Shown piece by piece: positions 20,760 through 64,000 of a stretch of 64,000 nt of DNA. The stretch is taken from contig NIVC01000102.1 of the NCBI GenBank assembly GCA_002269645.1, positions 825,950 through 889,949 on the forward strand. The letters run 5' to 3'. Position 1 is the first letter of the stretch, and every line of letters starts with the position of its first letter. A program made the translations under genes and the position numbers. The notes under the pieces are model-generated. The model saw only the letters and a program-made list of their open reading frames with translations. It ran no database searches and had not been told where the DNA came from. Source of the stretch: Macrostomum lignano. Lineage: Eukaryota.

Positions 20760-20971
20760 GCATTCCAATGCAAACCGCTTTCGTCCGGCTTGCCGGCAAG
20801 TTGGAGCGACCCTGTTGTGCCCTCGGGCGCACTTGGCAAATGGCACTTTGCGACTCCCTACACCAGGGTACCTCCTCGTCGGGAGACCCGAGTCCAGCAG
20901 ACGTGGACGTCTCGATCTCTTTCCAGGTCACCTTTTTCTGTGGCGGATTAGCCTGGCCAGCTTGGCTGGCC

Positions 20972-21016
20972 CGCCTTATTCTCCTCGCCGGCGACGTCGA
21001 GCGCAACCCAGGCCCA
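20972..21016 (+). other. 2A-like (StopGo/ribosome-skipping) peptide RLILLAGDVERNPG|P
   Basis: Exact match to the D-V/I-E-x-N-P-G-P consensus, with a hydrophobic upstream helix, immediately before the PHD finger. Confidence 0.8.
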
Positions 21017-23313: not shown

Positions 23314-26300
23314 GTGGCGTCGCAAGCACAGGCTACGAAAATGCCTGGAAGTACGCCAGCATCGCCAACTAAAGGAGTTGGTAAAACGGTTTCGAGCGAC
23401 AAAGCACCACCGCTTGCGATCTCGTCGAAATCAGTCCAAGCGACAAAGTCGGCAACAGCGGCAGCGCAGAACCCAAGCGCACAAGTATCGAGAGGACAGC
23501 AAGTTGACATCGAAAACTCGATGAAAGCTCGAACTTCCAGAGGTGGTTGGACCGATTCACACTGTGCAGCGAACTCAACGGCTGGCAGGACGACACGAAA
23601 AACAAGCTGCTGCTGATGAAGCTCAGCACCAAGCCGTACGACGCATTGGCAGATCGAGCCGCTCCCAAGAAGCCGGGAGAAAAGAGCTTCGATGAACTGA
23701 CCAAACTACTGGCCAGCATCCTGGAACCAAAGACGTTCGTCATGGCTGAGAGATTCAATTTCCAGCATATCACTCGCACGGCATCAATGAGCATTCGTGA
23801 GTATGCACAGCAACTCTGCATGCAGGCAGACAAGTGTCAGTTTGGCCTATCCAGAGATGAGAGACTGAGAGATCAGCTCGTATTCGGTTTGAATGACAAG
23901 GTGGCCATCAGCAAGTTATTGGAACAGGACTTCAGCACTTTCACGTTTGAGACAGCTATCAACATCGCTGAGGCGCACCAGAACCTATCACAAACGCAAA
24001 TACTAAAGGGTTGCACCAGTCAGCCGCAGTCTTCTAAATAATGAAAATTTCAGCATCGGTGGCCAGAGGCTCCCACTCTACAAGCTCCAAGTGTGGCAGA
24101 TGTGGCACAATGCATGGCTCCAATGAAGGGTGTCCTGCGAAAGGAAAAACGTGCAACAAATGTGGCATGCAAAACCACTTCGCAACAGTTTGCAAAACGA
24201 AATCAACTGGTTTTGGCAAAGGCCGAAAATCGTTCAAAAGCCCGTCAGCATCTGGTCAATTTAGGCGAGCTGCAGTGTGGCCAAGGACCACAAGCTTTGT
24301 AGATTCAAGCGAAGCTGAACAGGAGGATTGTTTTCACATTCGACATCCTGTTGATAGTTACACCGTGCCTGTTAGGCTCAGAAACACGAGCGGGTCGATG
24401 CTTAGCGTGAACGCACAAATTGATACTGGGGCAGGAGTTTCGGTAATGTCAAAAACAATCTGGAAACGATTGGGTTGTCCAAAGCTGACACCTACAGACA
24501 CTGTTCTGACAACATACGCTGATACGCAGATGAAGGTCTTTGGAACACACGACACTGAGTTGCAGTACAATGACGAGTTCATTCCAATCACATTCTTCAT
24601 TGTGGAATCGCAGAGGAACTTTGTTCTGGTTGGCCAAGACAAGCTCAATTTCACGCTAAACGCTGTAGACAACAGCTGCACATCGGCAACCCAGTCATGC
24701 AAATTTCCACCAGTAACTCTTAAGATCAAGGAAGGAACCACTCCAATTCATTGCAAACCCAGGCCGCTACCCTTCGCAATCAGATAGGGAGTCAAGGATG
24801 AAATCGATCGGTTGCTTGAAGAAGACACCATCAAGCCCGTCAAGTTCAGTGAATGGGCCTCACCAATTGTCGTGGTCAAGAAACCTTCTGGAAAGCTCAG
24901 ACTTTGCGTCGACTACAAGGTGACAATCAATTCTCATCTTATCAACGATTCACATCCGATGCCTGCACCTGACGAAGTGATTGCAACTGCTGCTGGCAGC
25001 CGGATATACACTCGTCTGGACCTAGAGAAAGCTTATCACCAGATCCCACTAAATGAAGCTTCCAAAGAGCTGACAGTAATGTCAACACCATTTGGGATGT
25101 TCGCTTTCAACAAGCTTCCGTTCGGAGTGAAAGCAGCACCTGCGATCTTCCAGCGGTACATTAGCCAAGTCCTACAAGGAATTCCTGGCGTCATTGCCTA
25201 CGTAGACGACATATTGATATGCGGCAAAGGCGTAGAACAATTGGCAGTTCGTGAGACGGAAGTATTGCATCGACTAAACCAGCAAGGATTGAAGATCAAC
25301 ACGGCGAAAAGTGAATTCCGCAAGACTTCGATCAAGTTTCTAGGCTATTTATTGGAAGGAGATCAGCTCAAGCCGGACCCAGCCAAAGTGAAGGCAATCC
25401 AGGACATGACACCACCGCAGAACGTTGGCGAGCTTGAATCCTTCCTGGGTCTCGTAAATTTTAGCGGCAAGTTCATCAGAAACCTAGCTGCACTGACCAA
25501 GCCTCTCAATCGACTAAGAAAGAAAAATGAGGACTTCGTGTGGACGAAGGAGTGTCAAATAGCATTTGACGAAATCAAGGTCACTCTCTCTGATCAATCG
25601 AGTCTTCAAATATTTGATCCGGAGAAGCCCATTGAACTGGAATGCGACAGTTCTCAGCGAGCTCTGGGCGGAGTGTTGACACAAAGCGGTCAAGTCGTGC
25701 TGTACATGAGCAAGACTCTGTCTGACGCCGAAACAAAATATTCGCAAATAGAGCGTGAAGGCCTGGCACTGGTTTGGTGCATTCAAAGATGCCATCGGTT
25801 CTTGTATGGCCGGAGGTTCACACTGATAACTGATCACCGGCCCCTCACATACATATTCGCGCCAGATAAACAGCTGCCCACCAGAGTTTCAGCTCGACTA
25901 CAACGATGGGCAATCATGCTAGCTGCTTATGACTATGTCATACAGTATCGACCATCAAAGCTAATGCTGTCGGATGCGCTATCTCGACTGGTGCCCGCTA
26001 AGCCTCCTGGCCGAATGCACAGACAGCATCGATCGGACTCCTCGAAGCTGACAACCCGGGAGTAATTCAGCTGGATCGCATTGCACACGCAACAAGAGAG
26101 GACCCGGAGTTCAGATGCCTGGGCGCAGCCATAATTAACAATAAACTATTTGACGACCCACACCTACTCAGCTACTCAAAGGTTCAAGATGAGCTAGCTG
26201 TCAATGATGGAATTATTTACAGAATGAACAGAATTGCATTGCCTCGTGTCCTGAGAGAAACTGCCCTGGCAGCTGTACACTCAACGCACCTTGGGGTGGA

Positions 26301-27342
26301 AAAGTCAAAGTCGATTTTGAGGGAACAGTTCTGGTGGCCACAGATGGACAGTGACATCGCTGACTACATTGGACGATGCAACGTGTGCAACGCGTACAAG
26401 TCCAGAAATAAGAACTTTCGGCACTCGTGACCAGAACCTGACAACCCCTGGGAGCGAGTGCACATTGATTTTGCCGGTCCGATAGAGGGCAAGTACCTAC
26501 TCATCATTGTGGATGCGCACTCGAGCTACCCGGAAGGCTTCATCACGAGCGACATGAAGGCCGACACAGTCATTTCCAGACTTAGAAGATTGTTCTCACA
26601 ACAGGGGGTGCCCAAGTGTCTCGTGTCAGACAACGGCCCTAGTTTTGTGAGCGAAGCGGTGACCGGCTGGCTCACCCAGATTGGCTGTTCGCACATCACA
26701 ACGCCCGCCTACCATCCACAGAGCAACGGCATTGCAGAGCGAATGGTGCAAACAGTCAAAGAGACAATCAAGACCAATGGTTTATCCCAAAGAAGTATTG
26801 ACAGATTTCTACTGTTCTACAGAGCTGCCAAAGGGAAGCAGCAAGCATCACCGTCCGAGTTGTTGAACGGCAGACAAATAAGACTCCCCATCTCGGAGAG
26901 CAGCACTCAGTCCAAGTGGATCCCAGGAGAATCACTCATCTACCGTGCATCGAGTTCTCATGAGCCACGAACTGTGAGATTCGTAAAAATGCTTGGCAGC
27001 AACACAGCAGTCGTCACCACAGAGACTGGACGAAATCTAAAGACCCACCTTGATCAACTACGAATCGGTGAGGTACCTGAGGCTCACGGAACTACGGAAA
27101 TGGGGGATTCCAAGCCCGGTGGCAACGGTCCAAGTGACGACGGCCAACAGACGCGTCCGTCATCGACAGACACTGAGATACTACCGGGAACAGAACAAGC
27201 TGAGAGAGCACGATAGCAACAGACTGAGGCCGGAGTTCAATCCAAGCCGTCACCCAGGCAAAGCGAACGCTTGGCCAAGAAAACTAGAATTTTTTATCGC
27301 ACCTGAGTGATAATTGTACACCTACCTATAGAAGAGGGAGGG

Positions 27343-42600: not shown

Positions 42601-44299
42601 TTTCCAGGTTTATTTGATGTGCTCTTCGAGCTAGATTGAACTGTCGAGTTGAAAGTGAAGGCTTCGGTGAGCCTCCGGACCAGTTGAGATCATGTCCAGT
42701 CTTCTTGCCAACCAAAACAGCCTTCTCACGAACCTCATTTTTTGGCTTAAAAGATATGTAAAAGAGTCCCTAACTGAATTGCATTGCGATTCTATATAAG
42801 CGGCTGGTATTAGCATGTCCAACCTTAACTTATCTGGACACCGCTCGAGTAGGTTTGGCAGCAACAATGTCTCATACGAGGCAGGTTGCACATTCTGAGC
42901 TTTAAGTCTGCGCTCGCCAGCGGAAACATCGTCATGAAATTGTTGCAGGCTTGAAAGCGAGGTGTCAGCTAGCCTAAACTCTGACAGCTGATGCATGGAG
43001 TCTCTGACTATCAGATCTGGCTTGCAGAACCGATTTCGCAGAATGGTGACCGCAGCTGCGTAGTTCGCGCCAGTCACTGCCAGACTTGGCCAAGTCGGAG
43101 AGAGAAGCGAGCAAATAACTGAATTTGTGAATATCACCGAGCGATGAATTTGAATCCACTGATGACAAAAACTGATCCCAGGGGGTCTTCTAACATGCAA
43201 CTGTCCCATTAAAGGTCGGTAGCTGACACTTAGGTAGCTTCACCTGAGGTTGAGCACAGCTTCAGGGCTGCTGTTGCGTCACATTTGAACTGAGGGAATT
43301 ATCTGGCAATTTAATACACTTGCGGCAGCGAAACGAACATTCATGGCTCTCAGCCAACTCCGATTTCATCTTATCTTTGGATAGATCTACCTGAATCTCC
43401 CCATCTGCATCTTTTAAAGCCTTCAGATTCTTCTTCAGAACCTCGGTCTACGCACGCATCTGCATCAGCGTTGGATTCGGCATTCCACCAAGTTAGCGAC
43501 AAGAGCATGTTGACCTTCGCGCGAGTCCGAGTGACCTCTGCTCTAATCAGAGCAGTTAGAGCAGCTTAACTGCATGAGGAATCCGCAAGCAAAATGACAA
43601 AGTAAAATTTACGCGGGTTTAAGTAAGACAGTGAAAAAGATATAACGTGTAATGAGTAGTGAGGGAACAGTATGAATATATGAGTTTTAATTTAAAAAGC
43701 AAATAAAAACAGCCCAAATGAAAACTTGGCTTGCAGACGAATCGATGTCTTCTTCAGGCTGCTGTCCAGTCCGTCCATCCTGAGTCCTGAATCCTGAGTG
43801 AGCACTGAGTCAGAAGCTTCGACCACGAAGAGACCAGAGGCCGTCGAGCGCGAATTCCAGCGAAACGAGACAAACGAAGAGACCAAGTCCGTGAAGACGG
43901 AAATCCTGCTGAGACGTATAAAAATAGACGACCAGAGCTGACAATAATTCAATTACGAGCTCGTACGAGCGTAGCAATAAACACAGTTTATTTAACTGGA
44001 GTTGTTACAAACAAGCTAATTAAATAAGTAGCAGTCAGACAGGTTGGGCAGCGCCGGGCCCAAATCAGTACATTTAAGCCTTAATTACAGAAAATTACGG
44101 TGGGGTGGTTGAGTGCAATATAAGACAAGGAGGGTGGGGTACGCGACGAAAGAAAGAGGCGAGATTGAGCAGCCAATCAGAAGGCAACGTGGGGGAGAGA
44201 TAAAAATAACAAGACTGAAGTGGACAGAGAGGGACAGAAAACAGAGTAAACAGAGGCAAGTGCAAGGTGAACTAAGAAATAAGGAAGAAAGTCGCTACA
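39620..44299 (-). mobile_element. Bel/Pao LTR retrotransposon, degenerate and 3'-truncated
   Basis: Gag YLLASL…ANYAAAVTILRNRF. RT RFRRNPVA…CDIEKAFLKI…DRNMLRFLW. SSVYDSLGL. RNase H/A17 LHGFCDA…AKSRVTP…SIARVELLGA. Probable 5' LTR starts TGTAGCGAC at 44299. Confidence 0.9.
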
Positions 44300-47080: not shown

Positions 47081-48264
47081 TATCGGCTGTCCGGAAAGTC
47101 GTGAGAATGTGTCAGTCAAGCAAGAAAGCAGCAAGCTGTTGACATGATATGCATAAAATTTCAATAATAGACTCATATATGTCTATAGTGTAAATTCTTG
47201 TTATTCTAGTAGCAAAATTGGGGGCAGGGGCGAGCTCAGTATAAAGTGCTCAATAGCAAATGCAACGCAGTGATCAAGCTTGAAAATTTTGACAGCGAGT
47301 TCTTCAAAATGGAAGACTTCCAGGGTTATGCCTACGCTAGATACCGTCTTGGAATCTCCGCTATTAGATGTCATGACGAGCTGCTCAAAGTTTATGGAGA
47401 TGCCACACCAGGTCAGTCAACGGTTTACAGATGGTACTCAAAGTTCCGTGATGAAGCATTTCCCCTGGCTTCAGCTCCTCGGACTGATCGGCCACGGTCA
47501 ACAAGGACAGCGGAACTGATCGAAACCTACCGAGCTCTCGTTGAAGAGGACTCAAAAGTTAGTGTCCGAGACCTCGCCGACTTTTTGGAAGTTGGAAAAA
47601 CAACAGTGCACGAAATTTTGACCGAGGATTTGCACCTTCGAAACGTTTCTGCTGTCTGGGTTCCACATGCTCCCTCCGAGGAGAACAAGACTGCATGCTC
47701 GCATCAATTGTGCCACGCCAATTCGCAGGCTTTTTTACAACGAGGGCGTGGAAAAATTTTGCGACAAGTATGTGGTGGAGGATGAGACGTGGGTGTACCT
47801 GAACAACACTGGCACAAAGCAAAACAACAGGTGCTGGCTTGGCCAAGGGGATCATCGGCCCCAGGTTGTCAGGCACTCGGTCGGCAATGTAAAGACAATG
47901 CTTCTGGTTGCTTTCACTCCAAGCAAACACTTCTCCATTAATTCCACAGCCCCAAAGCAAACTGTTGATGCAGATGGCATAGTTGAATTCATTCGGCACA
48001 CGGGAGACCTATGGCGTACTCTCAGGTCAAAGTCAGTTCACCTGTCGGATGTTATTTGGCAGTGGGACAACGTGCGACCTCACGCAGCCCGTTCTGTGCT
48101 TGCTAAGATTGCTTAAAAAGAGAGGTTCAGCGACTCGTTGACCATTGCCAAGCTGTAATCAACGCAAGGCGAGATTGGATTACCAACTAGTACAGTTATC
48201 GTGTTTTCTGATAGTTCTGACTGGTTTTTTAAATACATTCTCACGACTTTCTGGACAGCCGAGG
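47081..48264 (+). mobile_element. Mariner (Tc1/mariner) DNA transposon with defective transposase
   Basis: 30-bp TIRs at 47081-47110 and 48235-48264, flanked by TA. Transposase from ATG 47309: HTH, WVPH, DETWVY, WQWDNVRPH. Frameshift at about 47700, stop at 48114; the third catalytic D region (YSPDL..D) is missing. Confidence 0.93.
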
Positions 48265-48590: not shown

Positions 48591-50241
48591 TCACTGCAGT
48601 CTCATCCGACTGAGCTTGGCATGAGTCCAGCTGTCTCTCTGCTCCGCTGCAGTCTCCATGGCAACCAGGCGACCCAAGTCGACCCAGTCTTGCTGCAGTC
48701 TCGCCCTTGCCCAAAGCCTCCGCTCCTCATCTTCCCTGATGCGGTGAGCGCCGCTGTCGCTGCCGCTGCGGTTCGAAACTCGCCACCGCTTCTGCCTGAC
48801 CCAGCCGATCTTCTCCTCGTCCTGCGTCTCCATGGCGACGCATCTCTCTTTCTCGATCATCTCCATCTGCTGCAGGCTGAGCTCCACGTGCTCGCGGCAG
48901 TCGCTGTAGTGAGCCAGAGTGAGCAGCTCCTCCAAGTCCGGGTCTCCAAGCAGCTGTTCAATCCAATGATCGAATGCGATTGCAGGTGCGCGATTGCGGA
49001 GCAGCTCAGCTTGGAGACTCCAGCTCAGGCAGCGGAAGTTCACGTACAGGTGGGAGGAGAGAGGCTGCAACAGTCTGGCTGTGAACAGAGTCTGCGTGAA
49101 CTCGGGAAGGAATGGGAAGCGAGGCGGAGAGTCGCAGGGGAGGCAGAACCTCCACGCCCAGTCTGAGTCTTCTGGCAATTCAGTTGGGCCATGTTCAGAC
49201 CCTCGGTGACGAATATCCTGTGGCTTCAACCCTGACTCAACCTGATGTCTCTGCAGCTCCATCGCGAGTCTCTCAGCCTCCTCAGATTCTCCGAACTTCA
49301 AATGCGCCATGGCGGTCATGCACAGGGCGGCGCACTTGCACCACTGCAGCTCATGCAGGAGACTGAGCTGCCTCATCAGGGTGTCTCTGTCGCTCGATTC
49401 CGACTGCAGCTCGCTCACACACTGGTGCACCACACTGTACACGTCTGCAAACTTGTAGTACATTTCTTCTCGATGCTGACTTCCTTCCCTGATCTCTCTG
49501 ACAGCGGGCGGCGCTGTCAGAGGCAGCAGAGTGAACGGGTGAAAGTAGAACTTCTCTGACTGCAGAGGTCTCACGAGTCTCCTCAGCTGCTCGACCACTC
49601 CGCCGATGTCGCTTCTCAGCTCACAAAGTCGATCTCGAACCCTCGACTTTGTGTTGTCGAAGTCGCCGCCGATTCCAGCGTTCTTGAAGTAGAGCGGAGC
49701 GTCGGGCATGAAGAAGTGCGGCATGCACTCATCGGGCGACCTCCTTGACTTCATAAATTTCAGCATCACGTCAAGAGACTCCTTGAGCAGAGCGATCAGA
49801 TTGTGGGACAGCCAAGCCTCAGTACGCCAACTATTTGAGTCATGCTTCTCCAGAATTGCGAAGAGCAGAGTCTTTGCATGGTAGGTTTGAGTCCAGGTGT
49901 GTCCAGAGTGAGCGGCAAGTGTCTCTTGAAGATGAACTTGATGAGTGTGAACAACTGGCCCTTGACTGTGCTCAGGCGTCTCATGATGTCTTTCTCTTGG
50001 AAGCTGAAGCTCACTCTGAGCTCGTTGGTCGAGCTCGGTCTGGTCGCCCGAACGAGGTGAACTCCGTCATCAGTATACCAAAGCCGTTTTCTAACTCCAT
50101 GATAACTGTGTCTGTGAAAATTCTGATTTAGGATTTTTTCAGTTCTGTACTCGTAGAATCTGCTGCAGCACTGGATCGCATGGCACGTATCGTGTGCAGG
50201 CCGCACACCGCACGCCGTGGCTGTCACTGCAGGTTGGCTGC
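48591..50241 (-). CDS. Mab-21/cGAS-like nucleotidyltransferase (cGLR-type), last exon, with a 1-nt frameshift at 49886-49888
   Basis: Acceptor ctctgcAG at 50243-50242. HDTCHAIQC, ELRVSFSFQEK, LIKFIFKRHL; adding one A restores GLKTYHAKTLLF and joins the 392-aa ORF (…ECMPHFF…). Stop TGA at 48593-48591. Confidence 0.85.
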
Positions 50242-50744
50242 CTGCAGAGCGCAGTGAGCGGAGATTCGCTTGTGTGGAGTGAAAAAATGGGTTGGTTTAA
50301 AAGTTGAAATATGTACGCCTGCGCTTAATTACACATGCGCTAATGTCATGCACGCTTATTCGGCCCTGTGGTGACAGGAGGGATCCCAGTCTTTTCTCTC
50401 AGAGTTGGGGCTAGTGCTCGGACTCTCAATGTGGTCCTCAAACCACTCGCGTACGACGCGAGGTCAGAGGGGGGGGGCGGCAGTCAGTTAAGCAGCTCGA
50501 CCTGCCTCCAGCACGCGTACGACGCGGTGCCGGTCGGGAGTAGTTTCGGGACAGGCGTGCAACGCTCCAATTCCACCTAGGCCCTATACAGCTGACCCCA
50601 AAGAACAACCGGCAGAAAGGTCTCACGATTTTGGGTGATGCGCAGTTTACTTTTCGCGTGACGCAGTCGCAATGGAAACGCAGCGCAGAATAACAGTGAA
50701 CAAGAAAAAAAAGTGAACAGGAAAATTATGCGGGTGAAATAAAT

Positions 50745-53700
50745 GTTCCCCATAGACATTTAGTTACGTGATTGTTCAGTTATGTTAATATGAAGAGGTC
50801 GAACGGACCAAACTAGAAATAAAACAAATAAAATGGACTGAGAGCTGCATCAGCTGTCAAGCTCAAATTGAGGCTTTAGCAATGCACAACAGGGGCATAT
50901 TGCAAGCAGCAGCTACCGAAATGCCTGGAAGTCCGACAAAGTCGCCATCCAAAAGAGTTGGTAAGACAGCCGCTGGCGAGAAATCAGCGCCAGCGATTTC
51001 CACGAAATCTGTACAAGTGGCCGAGTCGGCTGTTGCGACAGTGGAGCAATCAAACGCACAAGGTGCGACACCAAACGCGCTCTCAAGAGGCCAGCAATTT
51101 GAAATCGAAAAATTAGATGAAACTGCGAACTTTCAGAGGTAATAGATTCTCGCAGTGCAGTGAACTCAACGGCTGGCAGGAGGACACGAAAAACAAACTG
51201 CTTCTCATTAAGCTCAGCAACAAGTTATATGACGCCTTGGCAGACCGAGCTGCTCCAAAGAAGCAGGGAAAAATATTTTTGAAGAAAACAGTTTTGTCAA
51301 GCAATATTTTGTCTCCAAGAATTTTGTTCTCGGAGGTCCGAGAAGAGGCGAAAGTGGCCACCCTGGTGACAGCAATCGGGGAAGAAGCCTAAAAAGTGCT
51401 CCGCAACTTGTGCCAGCCCGATACTGTGGTCTCCAAGAATTTCACACAGCTGTCGAAAATTCTGAGGGAGCACTACGCTGCGAGAACTTCCATGCTATCG
51501 GCCAGATTTCCCTTTCAGCAGCGTGTCCAAAGGCCGAGCGAGAGCTTCGCTAACTTCGTAGCCGGTCTCAAGGCAGCTTCCGAGCACATCGAATTCGGGG
51601 AAAACCTATGCGAGAGGCTGCGGGATCAGCTCATTTTCGGCCTTCGCAACGCTTCTTACCGCGCCAAGCTCTTGGAAATCGACAAACCCGACTTCAAAGC
51701 TGTGGTTGTTAAGGTCGACTCTTTGGAGACTGCGGAGAAATCCTCATCGGAGATGACGCACAAGGCTGAACCAGAGGATCACCTGCAGTTTCATAACAGG
51801 CCGCCACCGCAGAAGCAGGGTTCTCGCCAAGCACCCCCAAGCTCAGCCAGCGCCTCACAGTCGCTGTGTGCCAGCTGTGGTGGCGCTCACAATCGCAAGG
51901 AGTGCAAGCTTCGCGATGCTAAGTGCCACAACTGTGGCAAGGTCGGCCACATCCGAAAAGTTTGCAGATCTTCCAAGCTGCACAAGGTGAATCCCGAGCC
52001 GACCGAGCTGCAGGAGCCACTCTTTAGCCTCCGGCAGAGCGGATCGAGCAAAGGACTGGCGGTTGAGCTGCAACTGCAAGGCAAGCCGTGTCGCTTCGAG
52101 GTGGACACCGGGTCCGCCCTCACCGTCATCCCGAAGAGCCTCCAGGAGGATGTTCTGCCGGGTCTCCGTTTGTCGCCGACATCCACGGTGCTGCGAACTT
52201 ACACGGACGAGAGCTTTCGACCCATCGGACAGGCAGAGCTCGCGGTTCAGCACAACGGCCAAGATCGGCGGTTGACGCTGCTTGTAGTCGAGCAAAGCGA
52301 TGTTGCAGTACTGGGTCGCGACTGGCTGAAAGAGCTGAGACTGGACTGGCCGACGATCCTTGGTCAAGTCAACGCGGTGACCGGACAAGTTGCTGAACCT
52401 TGGGCGAGGCTGCACCTCGACTTCGCCAGGCCCGTTAACGGTCGCACGTACCTGGTCATCGTGGACGCCTTCAGCAAGTGGCCGGAGTTTCATAAGACAG
52501 CGTAACGTCTGCTGCCACTATTGTTGTGCTACAGGCCGGATCGCGACTCTGATTATCACAGTGAACGAGCCGAAGATGGCGTCAGTCAACTGGACTCAGA
52601 CTTCGGACTCTGAGCGAGGGATCGCGTCAGGAGACTTAATCAGCCCGTCCCTATTGCAGGATTAGGGACGGGCCTCCCTAGAGCGGCAGGTCGAGCAGCA
52701 GCCGCATGCGCGCGAGTTTCAAGTCGGCGATCAAGTTCTGCTGCGCGACTTCAGCTCCGGTGCGAAGGCCGGAGACACCCGCTGGACGGAGGGAACCGTC
52801 GTGTCTGCCGGAACCCGCAATTGCGCCGTTGACGTCGGCGGCGCTATCCACCAGCGGCACGCCGACCAGCTGCTAGCGAGCTCGCTGCCGGATGCGGGAC
52901 CCGCACCACCACTGGAAACTTTCGGCGAAGCAGCGCTGCCACTTGCTGAGCACAGCGAAGCGGCCGCAGACTGCCCGGGCGCAGACGGCCACGACAGCCC
53001 GGCGCTACCCACAGCGTCGGAGGCAGCCACCTGAGCGTCTGCAGTTTGACTAAGGGACTATTCGAACTGACTGACGCGCTTCGAACTTTAGGGGGGAGAT
53101 GTCGGATTGTTACTGTAACTTGTTTTATTCACTTTCTTAGTCAACGTGCAAGCCCTGTGACCCCGCCCCCACTCTTATGCGTGCCTAGCCAATCATATTT
53201 ATTCTAGTACCCACCACCCCATCTCACTCCTGCGTGCGACTCAATAAATGTACTGCACTAAACAATATAAATATATGGACGCTGTCGCAAGCCAAAGGGC
53301 TTCACTTTTCACGCTTCTCACAACAAGCACTTTGCCTCGCAGAACCCATAACTCCACAGGTAGCAATCAGCAAGCTGTTGGAACAGGATTTCAGCACTGT
53401 CACATTTGACATGGCTATCAATATCGCTGAAGCGCCCAAGACACAAGAAAAGTCCGCCTACTCATAGTCGGTTCAGGAGAACTTCAACGCGACCAAAGAC
53501 TACCGGTTTTGTAGAGACGGAAGGTACTGGAAGTGAGAATTGCTTTCACATTAGACATTCAGCAGAAAGTTACACCATACCTGTGAAGTTAAAGCAGACT
53601 AGTGGATCGATGTCGACAGTAAATGCGCAGATCGCTGCTGGCGCAGGAGTCTCCGTCATGTCTAAAACAATCTGGAAACGGTTGTGGGCCACCCAAGACT

Positions 53701-56120
53701 AAAGCCTACCGACACGGTACTGATGGCGTATGCCGATACCCGGGTGAAGGTTTTTGGAAATCTTGAAACGAATTGGAGTACAGTGGCGAGTCAATCCCAA
53801 GCATATTCTACATCGTAGAATCTCAGAGAAACTTTGTTCTTGTTCGTCAGGACAAGCTAAACTTGACACTCAATGCTGTTGATCAGAAAGCATCTACAGC
53901 ACGTCAGGTGAATTTCGACCAGTGACTCTGAAGATCAAGGAGGGGGCCATTCTGATTCACTGCAAACTAAGACAACTGCCGTTTGCACTAAGACGGAGTA
54001 AAGGAAGAGATTGATCAAAACTGCTCAAAGAAGGCATAATCAGACAAATCAAGTTCAGTGAATGGGTTTCACCAATCGTCAGAGTCAGTCCTTCTGGAAA
54101 GCTGAGAATTTGCGTGCACTACAAGGTGACCTCTTGTCAATGATTCCTATCCGATGCCCGCTCCTGATGAAGTACTCGTAATTGCAACTGCGTTCGGCAG
54201 CCAGATTTACACTCGTCTGGACTTAGAGAAGGCTTATCACCAGATTCTATTGGATGACACTTCTAAAGAGCTCACAGTCATGTCAGCAAAATTCGGAATG
54301 TTTACGTATCTCGAATGTTGCTGACATTCGCTCCCGTTTGGAGTGAGGACAGTGCCCGCGATCTTCCAGCGGTACATTAGCCAAGTCCTACAAGAAATAC
54401 CAGGTGTCATTGCCGATGTGGAGAACATCTTGAAGCTTAGCGGCAAAAGCTTAGATCAGTTGGCGGGTCGAGAGAAGGAAGTGTTGCACAGAATGAACCA
54501 TCAAGGATTAAAGATCAAATCAACAGGGCGAAAAGTGAATTTCGTGAAAGGTCAATCGAATTTCTGGGGTATTTACTGGAAGGAGATCAACTGAAACCAG
54601 ATCCAGCCAAAGTGAAGGACATGAATCCACCGCAGAATTTCGGTGAACTTGAGTCCTTTCTGGGTCTCCATAACTTCAGCGGAAAGTTCATCAGAACCTT
54701 AGCTGCACTGAGCAAGCCACTCAACCGGCTAAGGAAGAAAAACGAAGATTTTGTGGACAATGGAGTGCCAGGAAGCATTCGACAAAATCAAGGCTGCACT
54801 TTACAATCAATCAAGTCTCCAAATATTCAACCCAAGAAGCCAATTGAATTGGAATGGGACAGTTCTCAGCGAGCTCTGGGTGGAGTGTTGAAAGCGGTCA
54901 AGTCGTGGTTTACATGAGCGAGACATTGAAGCTGAGAAAAAATATTCACAAATAGAATGGGAAGTCCTTGCATTGGTTTGGTGCATTCAAGGATGTCATT
55001 GGTTCTTGTACGGCCGGATGTTCACTCTGATAACTGACCACCGACCCCTCACATTCATATTCGCAACAGACAAGGAGCTGTCAACCAGAGTTTCAGCTCA
55101 ATTGCAGCGATGGGCAATCATCCTGGCTATTTCTATGACTATGAAATACAATACCGACCGTCTAAGGTAATGAAATCCCACTTATGCCCGACAACCCGAA
55201 TGCTCAGACAACATCAATCGGACTAATGGAAGCTGACAGTCCTGGACTTATTCAGCTGGATCGCATTGCGCAAGCAACCTAGCTGGACCATGTGTCGAGG
55301 CGACTAAACGCTGCCATAGCCAACAATAGCCTCATTGAGGATCAAATGCTGATTAACTGATGCAGGATGAGCTGTCCGTCAATGATGGAATTATCTACAG
55401 AAAGGACAAAATTTTACTACCAGATGGCTTGAGAGAAACTGCCTTAGCAGCTGTGCATTCGACAAACAATGGAGTTAAAAAGTCAAAGTACGAGTAGATA
55501 TTAGAAGAGCAGTTCTGGTGGCCACAAATGAATCGTGACATCGCTGAGTATATCGAACGATGCAATGTGTGCAACGCTTACAAGTCTAGAAATAACATCT
55601 TTAGACACTCGTGGCACACACATCGATTTCGCCAGCCTAATAGAATACCTACTCGTTGTGGATGCGTACTTGTGCTACCCCTAAGTGCTCGTTCATAACA
55701 AACGACATGAAGGCCGAAACAGGTCTAACAAAACTATTTAAAGGCTTTTCTCACAGTTGAGTGTGCCCCAGTGTCTCTTATCTGATGATGGCCCCAGCAT
55801 CGTTAGTGAAGCCGTAACGAGCTGGCTTGCCAAGATTGGCTGTGCGCATACGTGTATCACAGCGCCCTCTTACCATCCCCAGAGCAAAGGGATTGCAGAG
55901 CGGATGGTGAGGACTGCCAAGGAATTAATCAAGACAAAAGTTTTTTCACAAAGAGCAATGACAGATTTCTATTGTACTACAGAGCAGCCAAAGGGAAGCA
56001 TCATGCATCACCTTAAGAGCTACTTAACGGCAGGAAAATCCGACTCCCGAGCCACGAACTGTGCATTTGCCAAGACGCTTGGCAGCAACACAACAATTGT
56101 GAGTACAGATGAGGGATGAT
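50745..56120 (+). mobile_element. Degenerate Gypsy of the same family as 23155-27501, interrupted by a nested Gypsy
   Basis: Colinear nucleotide and protein similarity (atgcctggaagt…, ELNGWQEDTKNKLLL, ISKLLEQDFS, PAIFQRYISQVLQ, LTDHRPLTFIFA) with many lesions. Confidence 0.85.
51330..53322 (+). mobile_element. Nested Gypsy derivative: gag-protease joined to integrase (RT/RNase H deleted), 3' LTR from 53100
   Basis: RLRDQLIFGL, two zinc knuckles, VDTGS, LGRDWL, then directly EPWARLHLDF…IVDAFSKWPE. PPT ggggggaga at 53091-53099. Confidence 0.85.
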
Positions 56121-56231
56121 TAAAAAAGAGGACCCAACGATCACCGCTCCTCATTTCTTGGTGCGAGCGCTTACTGATCGGCCCGATTCCGGAAATTTCG
56201 GCGACTCGAACCGGTGGACGCAGTGTCACCT

Positions 56232-56614
56232 TTACTGGCTCATTTTCTGTAGGAATCCCTCGATAAGTTCGGCACATCCTCCGCACACTTTTTCTTTTAC
56301 CCAGCTACTGTCCAGAACGCGAAGCTGGCCCACTGCAGACGAAACTCTCTTCCCTCTTCCGTTTCGCGCACTGCCAACACATTCAAAACTTTAAACTCCT
56401 CTCCCTGACCACGCTCCGCTACCTTTTTCTCGTCCGTCACTGCGTAATCGATTTCAGTATTCTCCGTTTCGGTTTCGCTCGCTGGCTCCCATTGCCGCTG
56501 AAACGTTTCTTCGGCAAATCTATCTCTTTCCTGCTTGCGCATCATTTCATCCCGTAGAGAAAAGCAACAGAAAGTAGGCGATGAACTTGACCGCATGGAA
56601 GCAGCGGGAATCAT
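56232..56614 (-). pseudogene. Orphan chromodomain-encoding fragment (probably TE-derived) with one frameshift
   Basis: EEFKVLNVLAVRETEEGREFRLQWASF, then in a shifted frame DSSWVKEKVCGGCAELIEGFLQK*. This fits the chromodomain pattern (V..I/V…R…F/Y…W…SW…C.ELI..F); preceded by an acidic linker. Confidence 0.65.
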
Positions 56615-59116
56615 TTAACGAGTAACCCCAGCCCATGGATATCCATCCTGGTTGTCGCAAAAAAGAAAATCGGTAAAATTCGAATCTGCATCGACGTGCG
56701 AGAGCCGAATAAGTCGTTCGTAATCGATCGACATCCGATGCCTCAGCTGGACGAGATTTCAATAAAGATCAAGGCAGCAAATGGCCGCGTATTTTCAAAG
56801 ATTGTTCTTAAAGCTGGCTATATGCAGATGCAGTTGCATGAGGCATCGCGTGACTTGACGGCATTCATCACGCACCGGGGTTTATATCGGTATTGCAGAG
56901 TGCCGTTCGGCTTAGCGTCAGCGCCAGCGGCCTTCCAAAGGATGTTGGACGACATAGTAGCCGAACTTGACGGGGTCTAACATATTCTGGGCGATTTCTT
57001 TGTTTTCGGGGCAAACATGACTGAACACGATTCAAGACTGCGAGAGCCACGACGGTGTGTGAACGACGCTGGCGCGGCCTAACGGCCAAAAGGAGGACAA
57101 ATGCCTGCTGCGCAATACGGAGGTCGAATTTTTCGTCTTCATCTTCACAGCCGACAGTATGCGACCTTCAGAGTCTCAGACCAAGGCATTCAGCCAGTTG
57201 CGCTCGCCGTCGAACCGAAAGGATCTGCAGGCGTTCCTAGGATCTGCAAACTACCTAATGCGCTTTTTGCCCAATTTTGCTAAAGACAGCTCTGAGGGCC
57301 CTACTGAAAGGGGATGCAGAGTTCGAGTGGTCGACGCACTGCGAAAGAGCGTTCCAAGAGCTAAAATCAGCGAGCTGCAATCCACCAATCCTGGCGCACT
57401 TTGACCCAGAGGCCGAGATGATTGTCACCACCGACGCCAGTGCAGAGTCTCTTGGTGCACAGCTGTTCTAGGTCCAAGACGGCGTCGACCGCCTAATCGC
57501 CTCTGTCTCCCGAGCTTTGACTGACACCGAGAAGCGATACGCTGCAAATAAGCGGGAGGCATTGGCCAGTCTTTTGGCCATGTAGAAGTGGCACTACTAT
57601 CTGTATGGGTGCCAGTTTGAGCTACGAACAGACCATCAAGCGCTACGTCAACTACTGTTGGGACCTACCCGTAGCGGCACGGGACATCGGCCGCTGCGCA
57701 TCCACCACTGGTGCGACAGGTTTCAACAGTACGATTTCCACGTACAATATCTGCCAGGCACTCGGAACTTCGTTGCCGACATTGTGTTAAGGTAGAGCTG
57801 TGGGTCGGACATGAACATCGTACAGCTAGCGGACACTGCGACGCCACAAGTCCAAGTAGTTAAACCTACCCAGCTAGCGACAGCCACGGCCGAGGACATG
57901 GTTTTGCGACAGTTGATTGAGCGAGTGACTAACGGCAACTGGGGCTCAACGAAGGACACGGGTTGCACCCGTTTGTCAAAGTCCGAGAGCCCTTAGCGTT
58001 TGACAGGATGGCACGTGCCTGGCTTTTCAAGAGCGAGCAGTCATTACACATCGGCTGCGGCGTAAGCTACTGGAATCGGCGCACACCGTTCATTCGAGTG
58101 TGGTTCACACTAAGCAGCAGTGAGTTCACCTGTTGGCCAATGATAAACTGCGACGTGGAGACGTTTGTCATAGGCCGCAGAAAAGAATTTCAAATTGCGA
58201 CCGGTTCCTCTGCAGCCTCTGCGGTGACCAGATAAGCCGTGGACACAGATCGCCATCGATATCGTGGGTGAGCTACAGGCAGCACCATCATCGTCACGAT
58301 TCCTTCTGGTCATTACGGATCTGCATAGTAAATGTCCGGAAGTATTCGCAACGTCAAACATCACCAATGAGACGACCTGCAAAGTGTTACGCAGCCTTTT
58401 CGCACGCTGGGGCCTCTGCGAGATGCTGCTCACGGACATCGGACCGCAGCTAGGCGGTGAGCTCACAGGGTTCCTCCGGGAGCGCGGCATCCAGCATCAG
58501 AAGACCATCCCCTACCGTCCGAGCACTAACGGTCAGACGGGGAGGCTTAACTGGACTCTGGTAGACAGCATACGAGTGGCCTGGGCAGAGAATGTCCCCA
58601 TGCAAGACGCGCTGCTGCAATTCCTTAAGACCTATCGCAGTACGCCGCATGGTCTGACTGGCAAGAGTCCAGCGGAGCTGATGCTAGGAAGACGTTCGCA
58701 CACCGCACTGACTGTACTGGCTCTATCTAAGTACACCACGGAAGCACGGCCAGATATCGTTCAGCTAATTAGGGAGAACAGCAGCGAACGGCGGCTTATA
58801 CCGACCAGCGGCAGGAAGGGGCGACCACCAACATACCAAGACCAGCCTCAGGACGAGCGATTATACCGCTCACTTCAAATCGAACCGCAGCAGCCACCGG
58901 TGCAACGCTACGGCTGGTAAACCTTTTAGAGAGGGGGAAGACACTGTGTCGTGATTTAATGTTTTAAGTATTTTTGTTGCTTGGACAATATATGAGCTAA
59001 TGTATATAGACCGAATCTTTTCGAAATAATTTCGCAATAAAGACAGACAAAGACAGGGTCTCGGCGTTAGACCACTCAAGACGCGGCTGAGCTGAGCTAC
59101 GCTCGCAAATAAAACA
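56615..59116 (+). mobile_element. 5'-truncated degenerate Gypsy (RT-RNase H-integrase, 3' LTR from about 58945)
   Basis: RICIDVREPNK…HPMP…PFGLASAPAAFQR, TTDASAESLGA, ITDLHSKCPE, TDIGPQL. PPT gagggggaaga. Confidence 0.85.
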
Positions 59117-59207
59117 ATATTGAATCCACGAGATATAGCACAAAGTTATTGAGCTTCCAGTTGCATGCGGATCTCAGCATTCTGATGATGAACCCAGCCT
59201 CACTCAC

Positions 59208-59572
59208 CTGCTCCCACTGCCACCTGTGCGTGGCCCTCCGTGACCTGCAGCCGAGTGGCGTCTCTGCAGAAACCATATTGTCCACTGCAGCCACCTTCCA
59301 GATGGAACCATTGCCCAGCAACCAGCACAGTCCAGTCAATGTCCGAGTCTGCAGCTGTCCTGCCGTTCACTTGCACCAGACTGTTGGCCCAGCCCTCTGC
59401 GTAGCTGCCCGTCATCCGCCTGCCATCCTGTGTGAGGACTCGAGCGACTTCTTCCAGCCAGTCAGCCAGTCTCTGCTGACACTTTGCTCTCTGCTCGGTG
59501 AATCCCGCATCGCTGAGCAGTCGATGCAGCTCCTCGCTCAGGCGCCTGTCTTGCTGGGAGTCGTCTGAGAGC
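59208..59572 (-). CDS. Mab-21/cGAS-like gene, internal exon carrying the NTase catalytic motif
   Basis: TGSYAEGWANSLVQVNGRTAADSDIDWTVLV (GS…DxD at 59409-59335). Acceptor cattccAG at 59574-59573. Donor AG|GTGAGT at 59207, phase-matched to 50241 (…VAVGA-G-SQPAVTA…). Confidence 0.85.
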
Positions 59573-59626
59573 CTGGAATGATCCGAGATGCGTGTGGGTG
59601 ATTTGCTCAGAGTTGGATGGACAGAA

Positions 59627-59966
59627 CAAGCAGGAGAGCTGAGAGTGCAGCTGCTGCAGCACTCAGACTGGCATCTCAAGCAGGAGAGCTGAGAGTGCAG
59701 CTGCTGCAGCACTCAGACTGGCATCTCAAGCAGGAGAGCTGAGAGTGCAGCTGCTGCAGCACTCAGACTGGCATCTCAAGCAGGAGAGCTGAGAGTGCAG
59801 CTGCTGCAGCACTCAGACTGGCATCTCAAGCAGGAGAGCTGAGAGTGCAGCTGCTGCAGCACTCAGACTGGCATCTCAAGCAGGAGAGCTGAGAGTGCAG
59901 CTGCTGCAGCATTCAGACTGGCATCTCAAGCAGGAGAGCTGAGAGTGCAGCTCCTGCAGCACTCAG
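59627..59966. repeat. 50-bp tandem repeat, about 6.8 near-identical copies, intronic
   Basis: gagagtgcagctgctgcagcactcagactggcatctcaagcaggagagct period 50; only 2 variant bases seen. Confidence 0.97.
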
Positions 59967-60024
59967 TCCAACCCAATCTTAACTTAACTGCCCTGAGTTT
60001 CGCTGCCAGCCTGTTGGAAGACGC

Positions 60025-61121
60025 TGTAATGTGAGCATCTAATGTAAATTACTGTTAGTCTTCGAATTACTAATTGTTGATTTGTTCAATTTTTAGTCAT
60101 GTTTATTAAATTTCTTTTTGTTAGTTAGAGTTTATTTTTGTAAAATAATTCAAAACAGTTCGACACGTTTCCAGAACCAGTCCGGCTCAGGCTCAGCGGA
60201 GGGTCGAAAACTTAGCAATGTAGCCGGCTTTGCGCGGTCAGCAAATCAGGATCGGCCTGGGCCCCTGGCACGCGGCAAGCCAGATCTACCCGGCCTGAGA
60301 GCGCGCCGCGGGTTAAATGCAAGTGGAATTATTGATCGGCCAGCCAAAAACCCACCACCGGCCTGAGGGGGTTTTGGAGTAACTGTATATGAAACTATGT
60401 TTTTGGCAGTCGGATCTCGAGTGCTGGTTTTTCTTTCCGGCCTCTGTTCTCATCTGCTGGCCGTTTTGCCACCTGCCGCGCTTTGAGGCGCCTATCGAGT
60501 CGAGCCCAGGCCCATATTTTATTCCGTTGCCCGACCGCAGTAGCCTTGCCGGCGTAACATTCGCGACGACCTCGTTCAGAGTTTGTCGTCGGCAAGCACG
60601 GTCTAGACAGGAGCTTCCGGTTTGACACAGTACGCGACCTCGATCCCGAGGGCCCCAGTGTTTCACTGAAAGGCATATCTGGTAGGATTTGGCCAGGGAT
60701 TCACTGAACTACCAGGCCCTGAGTGTCCTCTTCTGAGAGTAGGATCAGGCCAGGTTTGTAGGAAAGCTTCTCCGTTAGCCAAGATCCGCTGGCCAAAGTG
60801 CGTTATTATTTTATCGAGTGTTAAATTGCAAATTGCGTTATCTAATCCGTGTAACTCCGTGTTAATCAATTATAAACATTCAACTCTCAGCCATTATTCT
60901 CTCAGATAAGGACTATCACTCAATCTAAATCTATCTGGATTAGTCTTAATTCTGTGTTATTCAATTTCTCGTACCGTATCTGCGACTATTGGAGAAAGTC
61001 TGGTAGGACTCGCCGACCGGCGATAGGCAAATTAGCTAGGAGCTAAGAATTAAAAGTTTTAAAATCTCCGATCGCTCCAGTATAGGTTTGTCTAGGGCCT
61101 AAACTATTTGCCGATATCACA
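60025..61121 (+). mobile_element. About 1.1-kb LTR-like repeat (TG…CA), second copy, putative solo LTR
   Basis: Colinear with 10971-12140. No TSD seen. Confidence 0.7.
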
Positions 61122-61178
61122 ATATTATAAATGTCACTGCGCAAATGAGGTAAGGAAAGCTGAACCGGTCAGACTCAC

Positions 61179-61232
61179 CGATGGAGGCCCGAATCCCAGC
61201 GGTGAGCGGCTGCCTGCTGGGTCTCTGTGATT
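61179..61232 (-). CDS. Mab-21/cGAS-like gene, upstream 54-nt exon (gene start further upstream, not located)
   Basis: Strong polypyrimidine acceptor ctcttgctttccttccaacattgcAG and donor G|GTGAGT. Reads ITETQQAAAHRWDSGLH-R-LSDDSQQ in phase with the 59572 exon. Confidence 0.65.
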
Positions 61233-62210
61233 CTGCAATGTTGGAAGGAAAGCAAGAGTTCTCACAGCTGTTGAGTCAGATTCTCAGGCGGCACAAATCA
61301 CTTCAGTGAGTCGCAAAGTCCTATTGTATTTGAAGTTAAATTCTCAGTCAGTGCTTTATCAAAATTGCAACGCTTTTCAAGTAAAAAAAACAAAAAGTGG
61401 AGGGAGAGACAGGCTGAAGCAAAAGACCACGAGAAAGCACACACAAAGAAATACCACGAATAGGTGATTTAAAGAATTTCTAACTGGCTATGGATCCTAT
61501 GCTTACTGGACATATTTTAGGGTAACTTTAGGCTCTTAATAAAATAATTGCAACACAAGCTCAACGTGGCTGCACCTTAAATGCTTAGTATGAATTGGAA
61601 AACTTAATGAAGCCTAATGAAAGATCTATAAAGTAGGAAGTTAAGGAAAATGAGGCTTGATAATTCAACTTCCTTCGTAATTTCTTTGCGGATCTTTCTA
61701 AAACGTGCAGGCTTTATCTTTTTGTAAAAAGAGGCAAAATATGCCTTTTGCCATTAATTTATTTTTGAAATCAAGTCGACTATTGCATTAGACTTGCTTA
61801 CTTAGTCGAGTATACTTATTCGAGTATTAAGGTCATTAGCTAATTTTGTGTACGAGTACTTCATTAAGTTCTTGGTCCTTGTATTTTTGTTGCAAAGTGA
61901 AGTATCTAAGACAAATAAAATAGACTAGAGATAGTTTCTGTTAAGCGAGTGAGAGAATTCAAGATGACCAAATAAGTTTGGATGCTGAAAAGTATTTGGC
62001 AAAATACGTTGTCGTCTTTAATCATTCAGCCGAATAAAACAACGCAGGTATATTTTGCATTGCTCTATAGCAGTTGAGTTAAGTTAGAAACCTTTTTAGT
62101 CTTCAGTTCATAACAAACATTTTAGATGACGACAATTTGAACTTTTGCAACAATTGTTTAAATTAATAGCCTAAAATTACTCTTAAAATGTTAGAAATTC
62201 TTTAAATGAC

Positions 62211-62710
62211 CTATTCCTGGTATTTCTTCAGGTGGCGGCCATTGCATGATCTCTGTACAGTTCCCTCAAGTCCGTACAGGTTATTGCTTATGACATGTTC
62301 GACCATGTAAATCTTGGTACACCACGGTGTCTTCAGTTTGCCACCCTTCCGATCGTCACGGTCGAAGTTCCGCAGAAACACCTTGTCACCGACTTTGAAG
62401 CTGAGGATGCTGACAGACAGCGCACTTTTGAACGCAATCTTAAATAGATTTTTCATGCCGTCCCAGTGATAGGTCAGCTTCGATAGCTTATACCAGTGGC
62501 AGATGCCCGATTTTCATGGATCAATCAACACCACTCTTCTTGATGTTCTACCTCCAGGCGACGCACCGTTGACCGATAGCGCTTCTCCTGACTATCATTC
62601 CTGAGATCTGATGGAACAGCTGCTGGCCATCTTGCTTTTTTTCAACTTGCTTTTTAAGTTGTTCTTCTCCTTTGTTATTGTCAAAGACGCAGGGATGTTT
62701 TTTGCGCCGC
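62211..62710 (-). mobile_element. Ginger/Gypsy-integrase-like remnant (N- and C-terminal parts, core deleted)
   Basis: RRKKHPCVF…KLTYHWDGMK, then FKVGDKVFLRNF…RKGGKLKTPW (GPY/F-like C-terminus). Confidence 0.45.
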
Positions 62711-63441
62711 TATGCAAGTAAAGTTTTGTATCGGAATACGCGACACACATATTTATGATATTAGTGTCTTAAAATAAAAAGCCAAGTGCACGAAGTCCAG
62801 TGTACTAGTAGTGGATATACATGCCAACGTGTTGCGTAACAAAATGTACAATGATACATATCATACTGTATAGATTTAGATGTACTGAAAGTCAGAGGAC
62901 TTAAAAAAATTTCAAAAGACTTTTGGACGAGAATGCGCGGCTATAAAAAATTCGGCAATATCCATTGAGGTAATACGAATACGAATCACCACCTCGTATC
63001 AGATCATTCTCTGCGATTATTGACAAGTTTTTTATTTCGTAATCCTCAGAGAGAAATCACTCTAGAAGTGCGCTTGACATGACTTATGTCGTGCCGTATT
63101 CCATCTGGGCTCGAATAAAATAACGCATCCAAAGTTACCCAGTGTTGTGTCTTCTGTTTTTTAATGACAAATCAAATGAGCAAGTCTTGAACTTAAAATG
63201 TTAAATTAACCAGCCGATCTTCGACTCTTGTCTTTTTATTTATGTAATCCCCGCTTTAGCCCGGCCAGCTGCCTATCTCCTCCGTGTATTTTCATTTCTT
63301 GGACTCCAAGAAATAATTGTCTATGGCTAAAAAACATTCTTTCAAATGAGTTGAGACTCCCATCAGGCGTTTCTTGGAGGCCAAGAAATAATTGTCTCTG
63401 GTAGTCTCATTTCCTCCCGCTGGCTGCGGCAATTAAATATT

Positions 63442-63567
63442 ATAACCCCCACTTGATTCGGCTGTCTATGACCTAGAACGACTTCGGACTGCGCTTCTAG
63501 GCCTCGGCCTAGAAACGCAGTCCTCAGCCGTTCCTAGGCCAAAGAAACGAAATCAAGTGGGGATTAT
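63442..63567. mobile_element. 126-bp palindromic MITE-like element
   Basis: 17-bp terminal IR ataa(c/t)ccccacttgatt (1 mismatch) plus a central hairpin ggactgcg-c-ttctaggcc-tc-ggcctagaa-a-cgcagtcc. Confidence 0.6.
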
Positions 63568-63811
63568 CTTATACTTCTGCAAGCCTAGCTTGCTCTTGTT
63601 ACGCGTAGATCGCTAAAGCGTACGGTGCGTTGGCAAGCAAATTATTTTGTTTATGGTTCGGCTTGGCTTATAGCCACAGCGTCTCCCCTTTTTATAAAAA
63701 TAACTTGAACAGTTTAAGTCCATGGATGAATGAATAGAATGGATTGCTATTCTGGCTCTGGCTATTTTCGTTTTTGACTCTTTTGCATCCGGTTCCCCCC
63801 GTGCCTTTTCA

Positions 63812-64000
63812 TTGGTTGATGATTGCCATAGACAATTTTCGGCCTTCGCCCCTTTCTTTCGATGCACAAGCGCAAAGAACTGAGAATTTCAACAAAGTTC
63901 AATTTCAACACAAGTAACTTCTATTTACTAACAAGAAAGCGCTTGTGCATCGAAAGAAAGGGGCAAAGGCCGAAAATTGTCTATGGAAATCATCAACCAA
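63812..64000. repeat. 62-bp inverted repeat (2 mismatches, 65-nt spacer), may extend past the window edge
   Basis: 63812-63873 versus 63939-64000. Confidence 0.9.

Follow-up and report, generated by a model that had tools for sequence, protein, structure and literature searches.

Does the genome of Macrostomum lignano hold a hidden cGAS-like receptor (cGLR) gene on contig NIVC01000102.1? The stretch analysed here, called the window, comprises 64,000 nucleotides (nt; positions 825,950 to 889,949 of the contig in assembly GCA_002269645.1), and coordinates count from its first letter unless another locus is named. A model that saw the letters alone (the sequence-only reading) had proposed at 48591-61232 a gene for an uncharacterised nucleotidyltransferase of the Mab-21/cGLR type. 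Rather than a hidden new sensor, the locus is a further paralogue in a published cGLR family. Judged by sequence comparison, it is very probably an unannotated member of the M. lignano family in which ankyrin repeats, a cGLR core and a C-terminal module are joined, with its 3' three exons in the window. We refer to it as the window copy.

The coding pieces on the minus strand were found by six-frame translation, listing of open reading frames (ORFs) and tblastn with paralogue proteins, and their boundaries were set base by base. The paralogue proteins placed three coding pieces at 61225-61178, 59574-59206 and 50275-48594, and the refined gene model reads as follows.

61179..61232, minus strand: mini-exon of 54 nt (AG 61234-61233, GT 61178-61177)
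59573..61178, minus strand: intron 1, about 1.6 kb
59208..59572, minus strand: exon 2 (AG 59574-59573, GT 59207-59206), with the N-terminal spine helices, M-T-G-S and D-I-D-W
50242..59207, minus strand: intron 2, about 9 kb
48591..50241, minus strand: last exon (AG 50243-50242; stop codon TGA 48593-48591)

The mini-exon encodes (x)ITETQQAAAHRWDSGLH plus the CG of an arginine codon. It matches residues EARQAAAHRLDFGLHR of the paralogues P0006, P0002 and P0010 by tblastn, and its product is the linker joining the ankyrin region to the cGLR core. Exon 2 is 86% identical to P0001, P0002 and P0006 and the last exon 68-90% identical to the paralogues (tblastn); the latter holds the third catalytic Asp, SFSFQEK, the Mab-21_C lobe from TYHAKT onwards, the C-terminal module and a charged tail. 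All exons are phase-matched, and the split codons CG/G (Arg) and G/GC (Gly) recreate the paralogue protein sequences ...GLHR/LSDD... and ...GAG/SQPA... at the two junctions. The sequence-only reading had described three phase-matched exons with more than 680 codons. Its splice dinucleotides are indeed canonical, the phases match and its end coordinate, 61232, coincides with the first mini-exon base, but the coding sequence of the last exon would need one more base to be divisible by three. Since the introns are retained, a processed pseudogene is ruled out.

Searched against 5.8 billion proteins, the conceptual product had 45 homologues. All are from M. lignano, the best reach 83-87% identity, and E-values go down to 0. 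The homologues are 650-1185 amino acids (aa) long and carry ankyrin repeats and Mab-21_C as precomputed Pfam domains. When 1.84 billion representatives were searched with a hidden Markov model (HMM), 261 proteins were found with E below 1e-3 and 76 below 1e-30. The strong representative hits that were sampled are M. lignano proteins in eight cases out of eight, and the weak tail of the search is made up of 650-730 aa proteins from other assemblies with the canonical Mab-21 plus Mab-21_C make-up. The 45 homologues with E-values down to 0, together with 431 open codons past the frameshift described below, argue that the reading frame of the exons is far beyond chance. The paralogue P0006 (locus L001) has a four-exon layout matching the window copy, with the same 54-nt mini-exon (L001, 12283-12336) and introns of 227 and about 560 nt; window positions 59141-59699, that is exon 2 with its intron flanks, are 94% identical to L001 12439-12997. 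An exact look-up of the 392-aa ORF found no identical protein on record in the public collection, and the window copy is unannotated.

The family itself is known. The preprint 'cGLRs are a diverse family of pattern recognition receptors' (Li et al., 2023; PMC9980059) lists 140 cloned proteins in its Table S3, among them five from M. lignano (rows 89-93). The best match of the window copy, P0001, is the protein of row 93, PAA68676.1 (BOX15_Mlig016402g1), and row 92 belongs to the same subfamily (PMC9980059). With the family annotated in M. lignano and five members, the nearest relative included, listed and cloned as cGLRs, the words 'hidden' and 'uncharacterised' are not supported; the family is already catalogued as cGLR and the window copy adds one paralogue to it.

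Over the cGLR core and the C-terminal module the window copy is 83-87% identical to PAA68676.1. Both carry the motifs MTGS...DSDIDW...DTCHAI...SFSFQEK...TYHAKT, and the two share an intron position, between GAG and SQPA, where the intron of PAA68676.1 is also very large (17 kb). The window copy differs from PAA68676.1 by a one-base deletion in the last exon, by H-D-T in place of Q-D-T at the third Asp, by having no ankyrin exons within the window and by a 16-residue loop insertion with a low predicted local distance difference test score (pLDDT). This in-frame insertion, HRHSYHGVRKRLWYTD (50140-50093, minus strand, residues about 156-171), is unique to the window copy and falls in a loop of variable length among the paralogues, where pLDDT is below 50.

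The 671-residue conceptual product was modelled with AlphaFold2 (AF2) on an alignment of 41 paralogues. The model has a pLDDT of 81.5 and a predicted template modelling score (pTM) of 0.83, and gives the encoded polypeptide the predicted bilobed fold of the cGAS/Mab-21 nucleotidyltransferases. Compared with the PDB by Foldseek, it matched human cGAS (E 8e-7, target-normalised template modelling score (TM) 0.50-0.55), Sp-cGLR1 (8gjy; E 1.4e-5), a second 'cGAS-like receptor 1' entry (8gjw) and human MB21D2 (7lt1; E 1.4e-4); for these four bilobed structures E runs from 8e-7 to 1e-4. MAB21L1 (5eom) and MiD51 (4nxt), which have the same fold, are also among the top structural matches, and the whole range is 8e-7 to 1e-2. 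With cGAS, MAB21L1, Sp-cGLR1 and MB21D2 at the top, the Mab-21/cGAS fold of the sequence-only reading was borne out by the comparison that had been suggested as its check.

The catalytic motifs of the window copy lie at the following codons.

59409-59407 (G55) and 59406-59404 (S56), minus strand: M-T-G-S, in exon 2
59343-59341 (D77) and 59337-59335 (D79), minus strand: D-I-D-W, in exon 2
50194-50168, minus strand: HDTCHAIQC, in the last exon, with the third Asp (D139) at 50191-50189
50011-49991, minus strand: SFSFQEK, in the last exon
49886-49869, minus strand: TYHAKT, in the last exon, start of the Mab-21_C lobe

In cGAS-like receptors the active site is made of the GS loop and three acidic residues, and the acids bind two metal ions for nucleotidyl transfer. 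In the window copy M-T-G-S is followed by a spacer of 20 residues, D-I-D-W, a second spacer of 57 residues and H-D-T. All motifs named earlier from the letters (GS...DID with its long spacer, HDTCHAIQC, SFSFQEK and TYHAKT) are present at verified codons, and the catalytic triad is apparently intact as claimed, with GS, DxD and third Asp in place. In the AF2 model GS comes after strand 50-54, strand 77-91 begins with D77 and D79, and D139 is part of strand 137-146; as modelled, this strand placement is the cGAS arrangement, and GS with D77, D79 and D139 forms a predicted active site of the cGLR type. The solved cGLRs likewise have the GS loop, a DxD opening the second strand and the third Asp on a later strand, and share the SFS..E and YH.K landmarks of the C-terminal lobe. 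They differ from the window copy in that identity is 11-18% with no direct sequence-profile match to the PDB, that the GS-DxD spacer has 20 residues in the window copy and about 12 in the canonical set, and that the Macrostomum family has an extra conserved module of ~250 residues, a charged C-terminal tail and, in the paralogues, N-terminal ankyrin repeats.

Sequence profiles connect the family with canonical Mab-21 proteins. In hhalign the family aligned with 24 canonical Mab-21 plus Mab-21_C proteins at a probability of 99.6% and E 4e-24; the alignment spans 268 columns, starting at the spine helix and reaching the Mab-21_C lobe, with GS on GS, SQPA on HGPA and D139 on the canonical invariant Asp. 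The canonical set in turn matches Sp-cGLR1 (E 6.5e-36) and cGAS (about 3e-17) via its ...vDlvpa... strand. Li et al. define cGLRs by the motif h[QT]GS X8-20 [DE]h[DE]h X50-90 h[DE]h, by homology in both lobes and by AF2 likeness to cGAS (PMC9980059). The window copy has the catalytic residues and their spacings, homology that extends through hhalign across the nucleotidyltransferase core and the C-terminal helix bundle, and structural homology in the AF2 model. The strict motif expression also picks Y-E-Y at residues 151-153 as third acid, a match that we regard as coincidental.

An uninterrupted frame from start to stop is not found in the window copy, which has a one-base deletion and a premature TGA.

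49886..49888, minus strand: frameshift site, a one-base deletion relative to four paralogue DNAs, from DNA alignment and frame analysis
49796..49798, minus strand: premature TGA, end of the exon-2 frame read uncorrected, from the ORF list

In the DNA alignment the window reads GGACTCAA-ACCTAC and four paralogue DNAs read GGACTCAAGACCTAC. AAGACC has thus become AAACC, and the frames with Lys and Thr share base 49886. Because this one base is absent from the last exon, SFSFQEK and TYHAKT stand in different frames. Read uncorrected, the frame stops 30 codons past the deletion and its product would be without the whole Mab-21_C lobe and the C-terminal module; past the frameshift, 431 codons are open to the family's normal stop, with no further stops. 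A tiny intron or alternative splice bypassing the lesion was considered and rejected, as no GT...AG pair keeps the conserved GLKTYHAKT segment.

The 5' part is incomplete as well. No start codon occurs in the three exons, the mini-exon opening at an acceptor, and a loose tblastn with the paralogues detected no ankyrin-repeat exon or start codon in 61300-64000, up to the window end 2.8 kb upstream of 61232. In the paralogues the ankyrin exon lies 0 to 1.8 kb upstream of the mini-exon and ankyrin repeats make up 150-560 residues; the annotated paralogue P0003 is without any ankyrin repeats, and the introns of the window copy are expanded. The ankyrin exons and the promoter of the window copy are therefore beyond the window or lost. 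The word 'gene' in the sequence-only reading was too strong, as the copy is frameshifted as assembled and 5'-incomplete within the window; by its assembled sequence it cannot make a full cGLR protein.

Since splice sites, downstream frame and catalytic residues are all intact, the lesion arose either very recently or through an error of assembly. We give about an even chance to a real and very recent lesion, which would make the window copy a just-dead paralogue. The best surviving alternative, which we hold quite possible if short of probable, is that the window copy belongs to an intact and expressed cGLR gene, from which an error in assembly or consensus removed the base at 49886-49888 and whose ankyrin exons lie just past the window end. 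The six intact splice dinucleotides, the 431 open codons with no other stop and the intact catalytic residues would all suit a live gene, and annotated paralogues too have genes of 17-30 kb with transposon-filled introns. However, four paralogue DNAs have AAGACC at the site and no long homopolymer is found there, the public collection holds no gene call of the product, and the surroundings are almost wholly transposon sequence.

Pairwise ratios of non-synonymous to synonymous rates (dN/dS) are 0.63-0.87 between the window copy and three paralogues and 0.53-0.64 among those paralogues, at a synonymous rate (dS) of about 0.11-0.14 throughout. In the Mab-21_C lobe dN/dS is 0.50-0.65, similar to the paralogues, as a live gene would have it. 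Against a live gene stands the lineage-specific count of non-synonymous to synonymous changes, which comes out somewhat higher for the window copy, at 20.5/8.5, than for the three paralogues (about 1.6-1.8 to 1), in counts that are small. The window copy thus appears slightly more relaxed than its paralogues and by these comparisons shows no long-term decay, and dN/dS did not separate a pseudogene from a live gene.

Several observations weigh against reading the window copy and its family as cGLRs. The Pfam search that had been proposed as a check gave a divided answer for the window copy: Mab-21 (PF03281) has no match, and Mab-21_C matches with E 6e-4 and 20.3 bits, below the gathering cut-off of 24.1. 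A family profile without the ankyrin region matches no PDB sequence, and with that region the search is swamped by ankyrin proteins. The DxD was not unambiguously placed by hhalign because the GS-DxD spacer is about 8 residues longer than the canonical one of about 12; at 20 residues it is at the upper limit of the published motif. The third acid is flanked by H/T (Q/T in close paralogues), which is non-hydrophobic, unlike the motif; distant family members have V-D-I, M-D-L and similar at this place. In Table S3, finally, the active-cGLR column is empty for the M. lignano rows 89-93, and none of these is among the 15 active enzymes (PMC9980059).

Conservation across the family speaks for a working site. 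All 46 of the diverse members compared have GS; 43 retain the first Asp, 42 the second and 39 the third, with Glu there in one more, and losses fall together in the same few proteins (P0010, P0031, P0041, P0051 and P0052). From the alignment, this pattern is that of an active site either kept whole or abandoned.

MAB21L1 and MiD51 are non-catalytic proteins of the Mab-21 fold. The whole family, window copy included, may be made of catalytically silent scaffolds like these two, with the ankyrin and C-terminal modules doing the work and the acids kept for nucleotide binding or stability only, an explanation that we consider rather unlikely. It would fit the presence of both proteins among the structural matches, the unusually long spacer and non-canonical third-Asp flanks, the place of the cloned M. 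lignano proteins outside the 15 active cGLRs (PMC9980059), and the loss of acids in several members, one of them fused to a kinase. Unlike MAB21L1 and MiD51, most members of the Macrostomum family keep GS and all three acids. GS is retained in 46/46 and the acids in about 39-43/46 among members only 20-30% identical, the losses are correlated within the same proteins as expected for a site kept whole or abandoned, and in the curation by Li et al. the active sites of the family count as complete (PMC9980059).

A minority of the family (alignment A5, where P0033 and P0091 are also listed) lost two or three catalytic residues together. P0010, one of the members short of catalytic residues, is fused to a C-terminal protein kinase domain. 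By their sequences, members without the catalytic residues look like pseudoenzyme offshoots. Near the third catalytic Asp, Cys and His residues are conserved family-wide (C95, C141, C146, C147 and H114/H142, in HLEGGC..., EGH and DTCHAIxCC); from their conservation, they might form a metal site loosely recalling the zinc thumb of cGAS.

Under the preferred reading of a cGLR family with retained active sites, intact members would be ligand-activated synthases of a nucleotide second messenger, and the N-terminal ankyrin repeats and the C-terminal module would serve as ligand-sensing, regulatory or partner-binding parts. The rapid evolution and large expansion of the family suggest an immune or conflict role. 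Most platyhelminths are without predicted cGLRs beyond Mab21-like proteins, and Macrostomum is not in the species table of supplementary file 5 of the preprint (Li et al., 2023; PMC9980059). A planarian study of 2026 found neither cGAS nor STING in Schmidtea (PMC13563047). Signalling through STING by the Macrostomum family would be pure conjecture. The boldest version, which we consider improbable, is that the ankyrin-cGLR proteins work as active sensors within a phylum from which cGAS-STING is otherwise believed to be lost, that the C-terminal module is a new ligand-sensing or output domain, and that the window copy is one live or very recently dead member. If true, this would allow signalling via a receptor other than STING. 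The window alone carries little weight, since it adds one unannotated, possibly dead paralogue to a listed cGLR family. As M. lignano lends itself to laboratory work, a targeted study of one intact paralogue could be worth the effort.

The C-terminal module is encoded in the last exon.

48735..49493, minus strand: family-specific C-terminal module, 253 aa, residues about 375-627

Modelled alone with AF2, the module reached a pLDDT of 88.5 and a pTM of 0.87, with a layout of four helical hairpin helices, a small three-stranded sheet and more helices. Foldseek found no significant match to it in the PDB; the best were of the tetratricopeptide repeat (TPR) type (IFIT1, Acl4 and KLC) with E 0.5 or worse and TM 0.4 or lower. 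The 'TPR-like' C-terminus of the sequence-only reading is thus a faint, non-significant resemblance, and the novelty it had claimed for the module stands among solved structures. A profile comparison with the canonical Mab-21 proteins of 650-730 aa showed no similarity to their C-termini. By these comparisons the module is family-specific at the sequence level and unmatched among solved structures. The charged tail that follows it is a long helix of low confidence in the AF2 model. Appended domains of the ankyrin/TPR type, ankyrin among them, occur in 13% of cGLRs (PMC9980059). The Macrostomum proteins resemble such domain-fused cGLRs (Li et al., 2023) in joining a cGLR core to protein-interaction repeats and differ in that their C-terminal module has no recognisable TPR and is confined to the Macrostomum family in sequence.

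The introns of the window copy are swollen and the whole window is transposon-dominated. Intron 1 has 227 nt in P0006 and about 1.6 kb in the window copy, where it contains a 50-bp x 6.8 tandem repeat (59627-59966, 98% identity; Tandem Repeats Finder, repeat search). The repeat ends about 50 nt upstream of the exon 2 acceptor and partly overlaps the stretch that is 94% identical to L001. Intron 2, at the same position in the paralogues, measures about 560 nt in P0006, about 490 nt in P0003 and about 17 kb in P0001, and the P0003 gene spans 30 kb. In the window copy it is filled with decayed Ty3/gypsy fragments on the plus strand, opposite to the gene (51396-58920), whose ORFs match the Pfam models of an aspartyl protease, RVT_1, RT_RNaseH, RT_RNaseH_2 and rve; the repeat search found no pair of long terminal repeats around them. 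As annotated paralogues have swollen introns too, intron swelling alone is no sign of gene death.

That the exons are not a host gene at all, being chance ORFs or part of a transposable element, can practically be dismissed: the window is dominated by gypsy, LINE-like (long interspersed nuclear element) and mariner remnants, but dozens of host genes with several exons and conserved intron positions match the exons, the transposon ORFs run opposite to the gene and stay within the intron, and the fold is that of a cellular nucleotidyltransferase, so that homologues, conserved introns and fold together refute it.

What the locus documents is the turnover of a family by birth and death within transposon-rich DNA, in which intron swelling by retrotransposons is tolerated and, throughout the family, catalytic residues are retained together or lost together. 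A second, partial copy of the last exon (L003, 36278-37783), 83% identical to P0003 as protein, follows immediately downstream of the P0003 gene. Of the sequences found, this partial copy is the closest in DNA to the last exon of the window copy (92% over 1.55 kb). Its position beside P0003 indicates that the family also grows by local tandem duplication.

Other elements were noted in the window. A better preserved Ty3/gypsy element lies on the plus strand at 24041-27216, with gag-protease at 24041-24787, reverse transcriptase (RT)-RNase H at 24812-26065 and integrase at 26458-27216; on inspection by eye, intron 2 has an RT ORF (54343-54594) that resembles a decayed copy of the RT of this element (AIFQRYISQVLQEIPGVIADVENIL compared with AIFQRYISQVLQGIPGVIAYVDDIL). 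About 0.5 kb 3' of the stop codon of the window copy there is a remnant of a Mariner/Mos1-type transposase (47246-48116, plus strand) with matches to HTH_48 and HTH_32. Further transposon-like ORFs are found at 12168-12704 (plus strand, RVT_1 match), at 42631-43209 (minus strand, DUF1759 match, Pao/BEL gag-like) and at 20543-22798 (plus strand, no Pfam match, by eye resembling a LINE ORF). The two strands of 2949-4404 both have long ORFs of low complexity, in which Cys, Leu and Val abound on one strand and Thr, Gln, Asp and Ser on the other; AT skew is strong (-0.47) in 2001-4000, and the region looks like a satellite-like repeat, not a gene.

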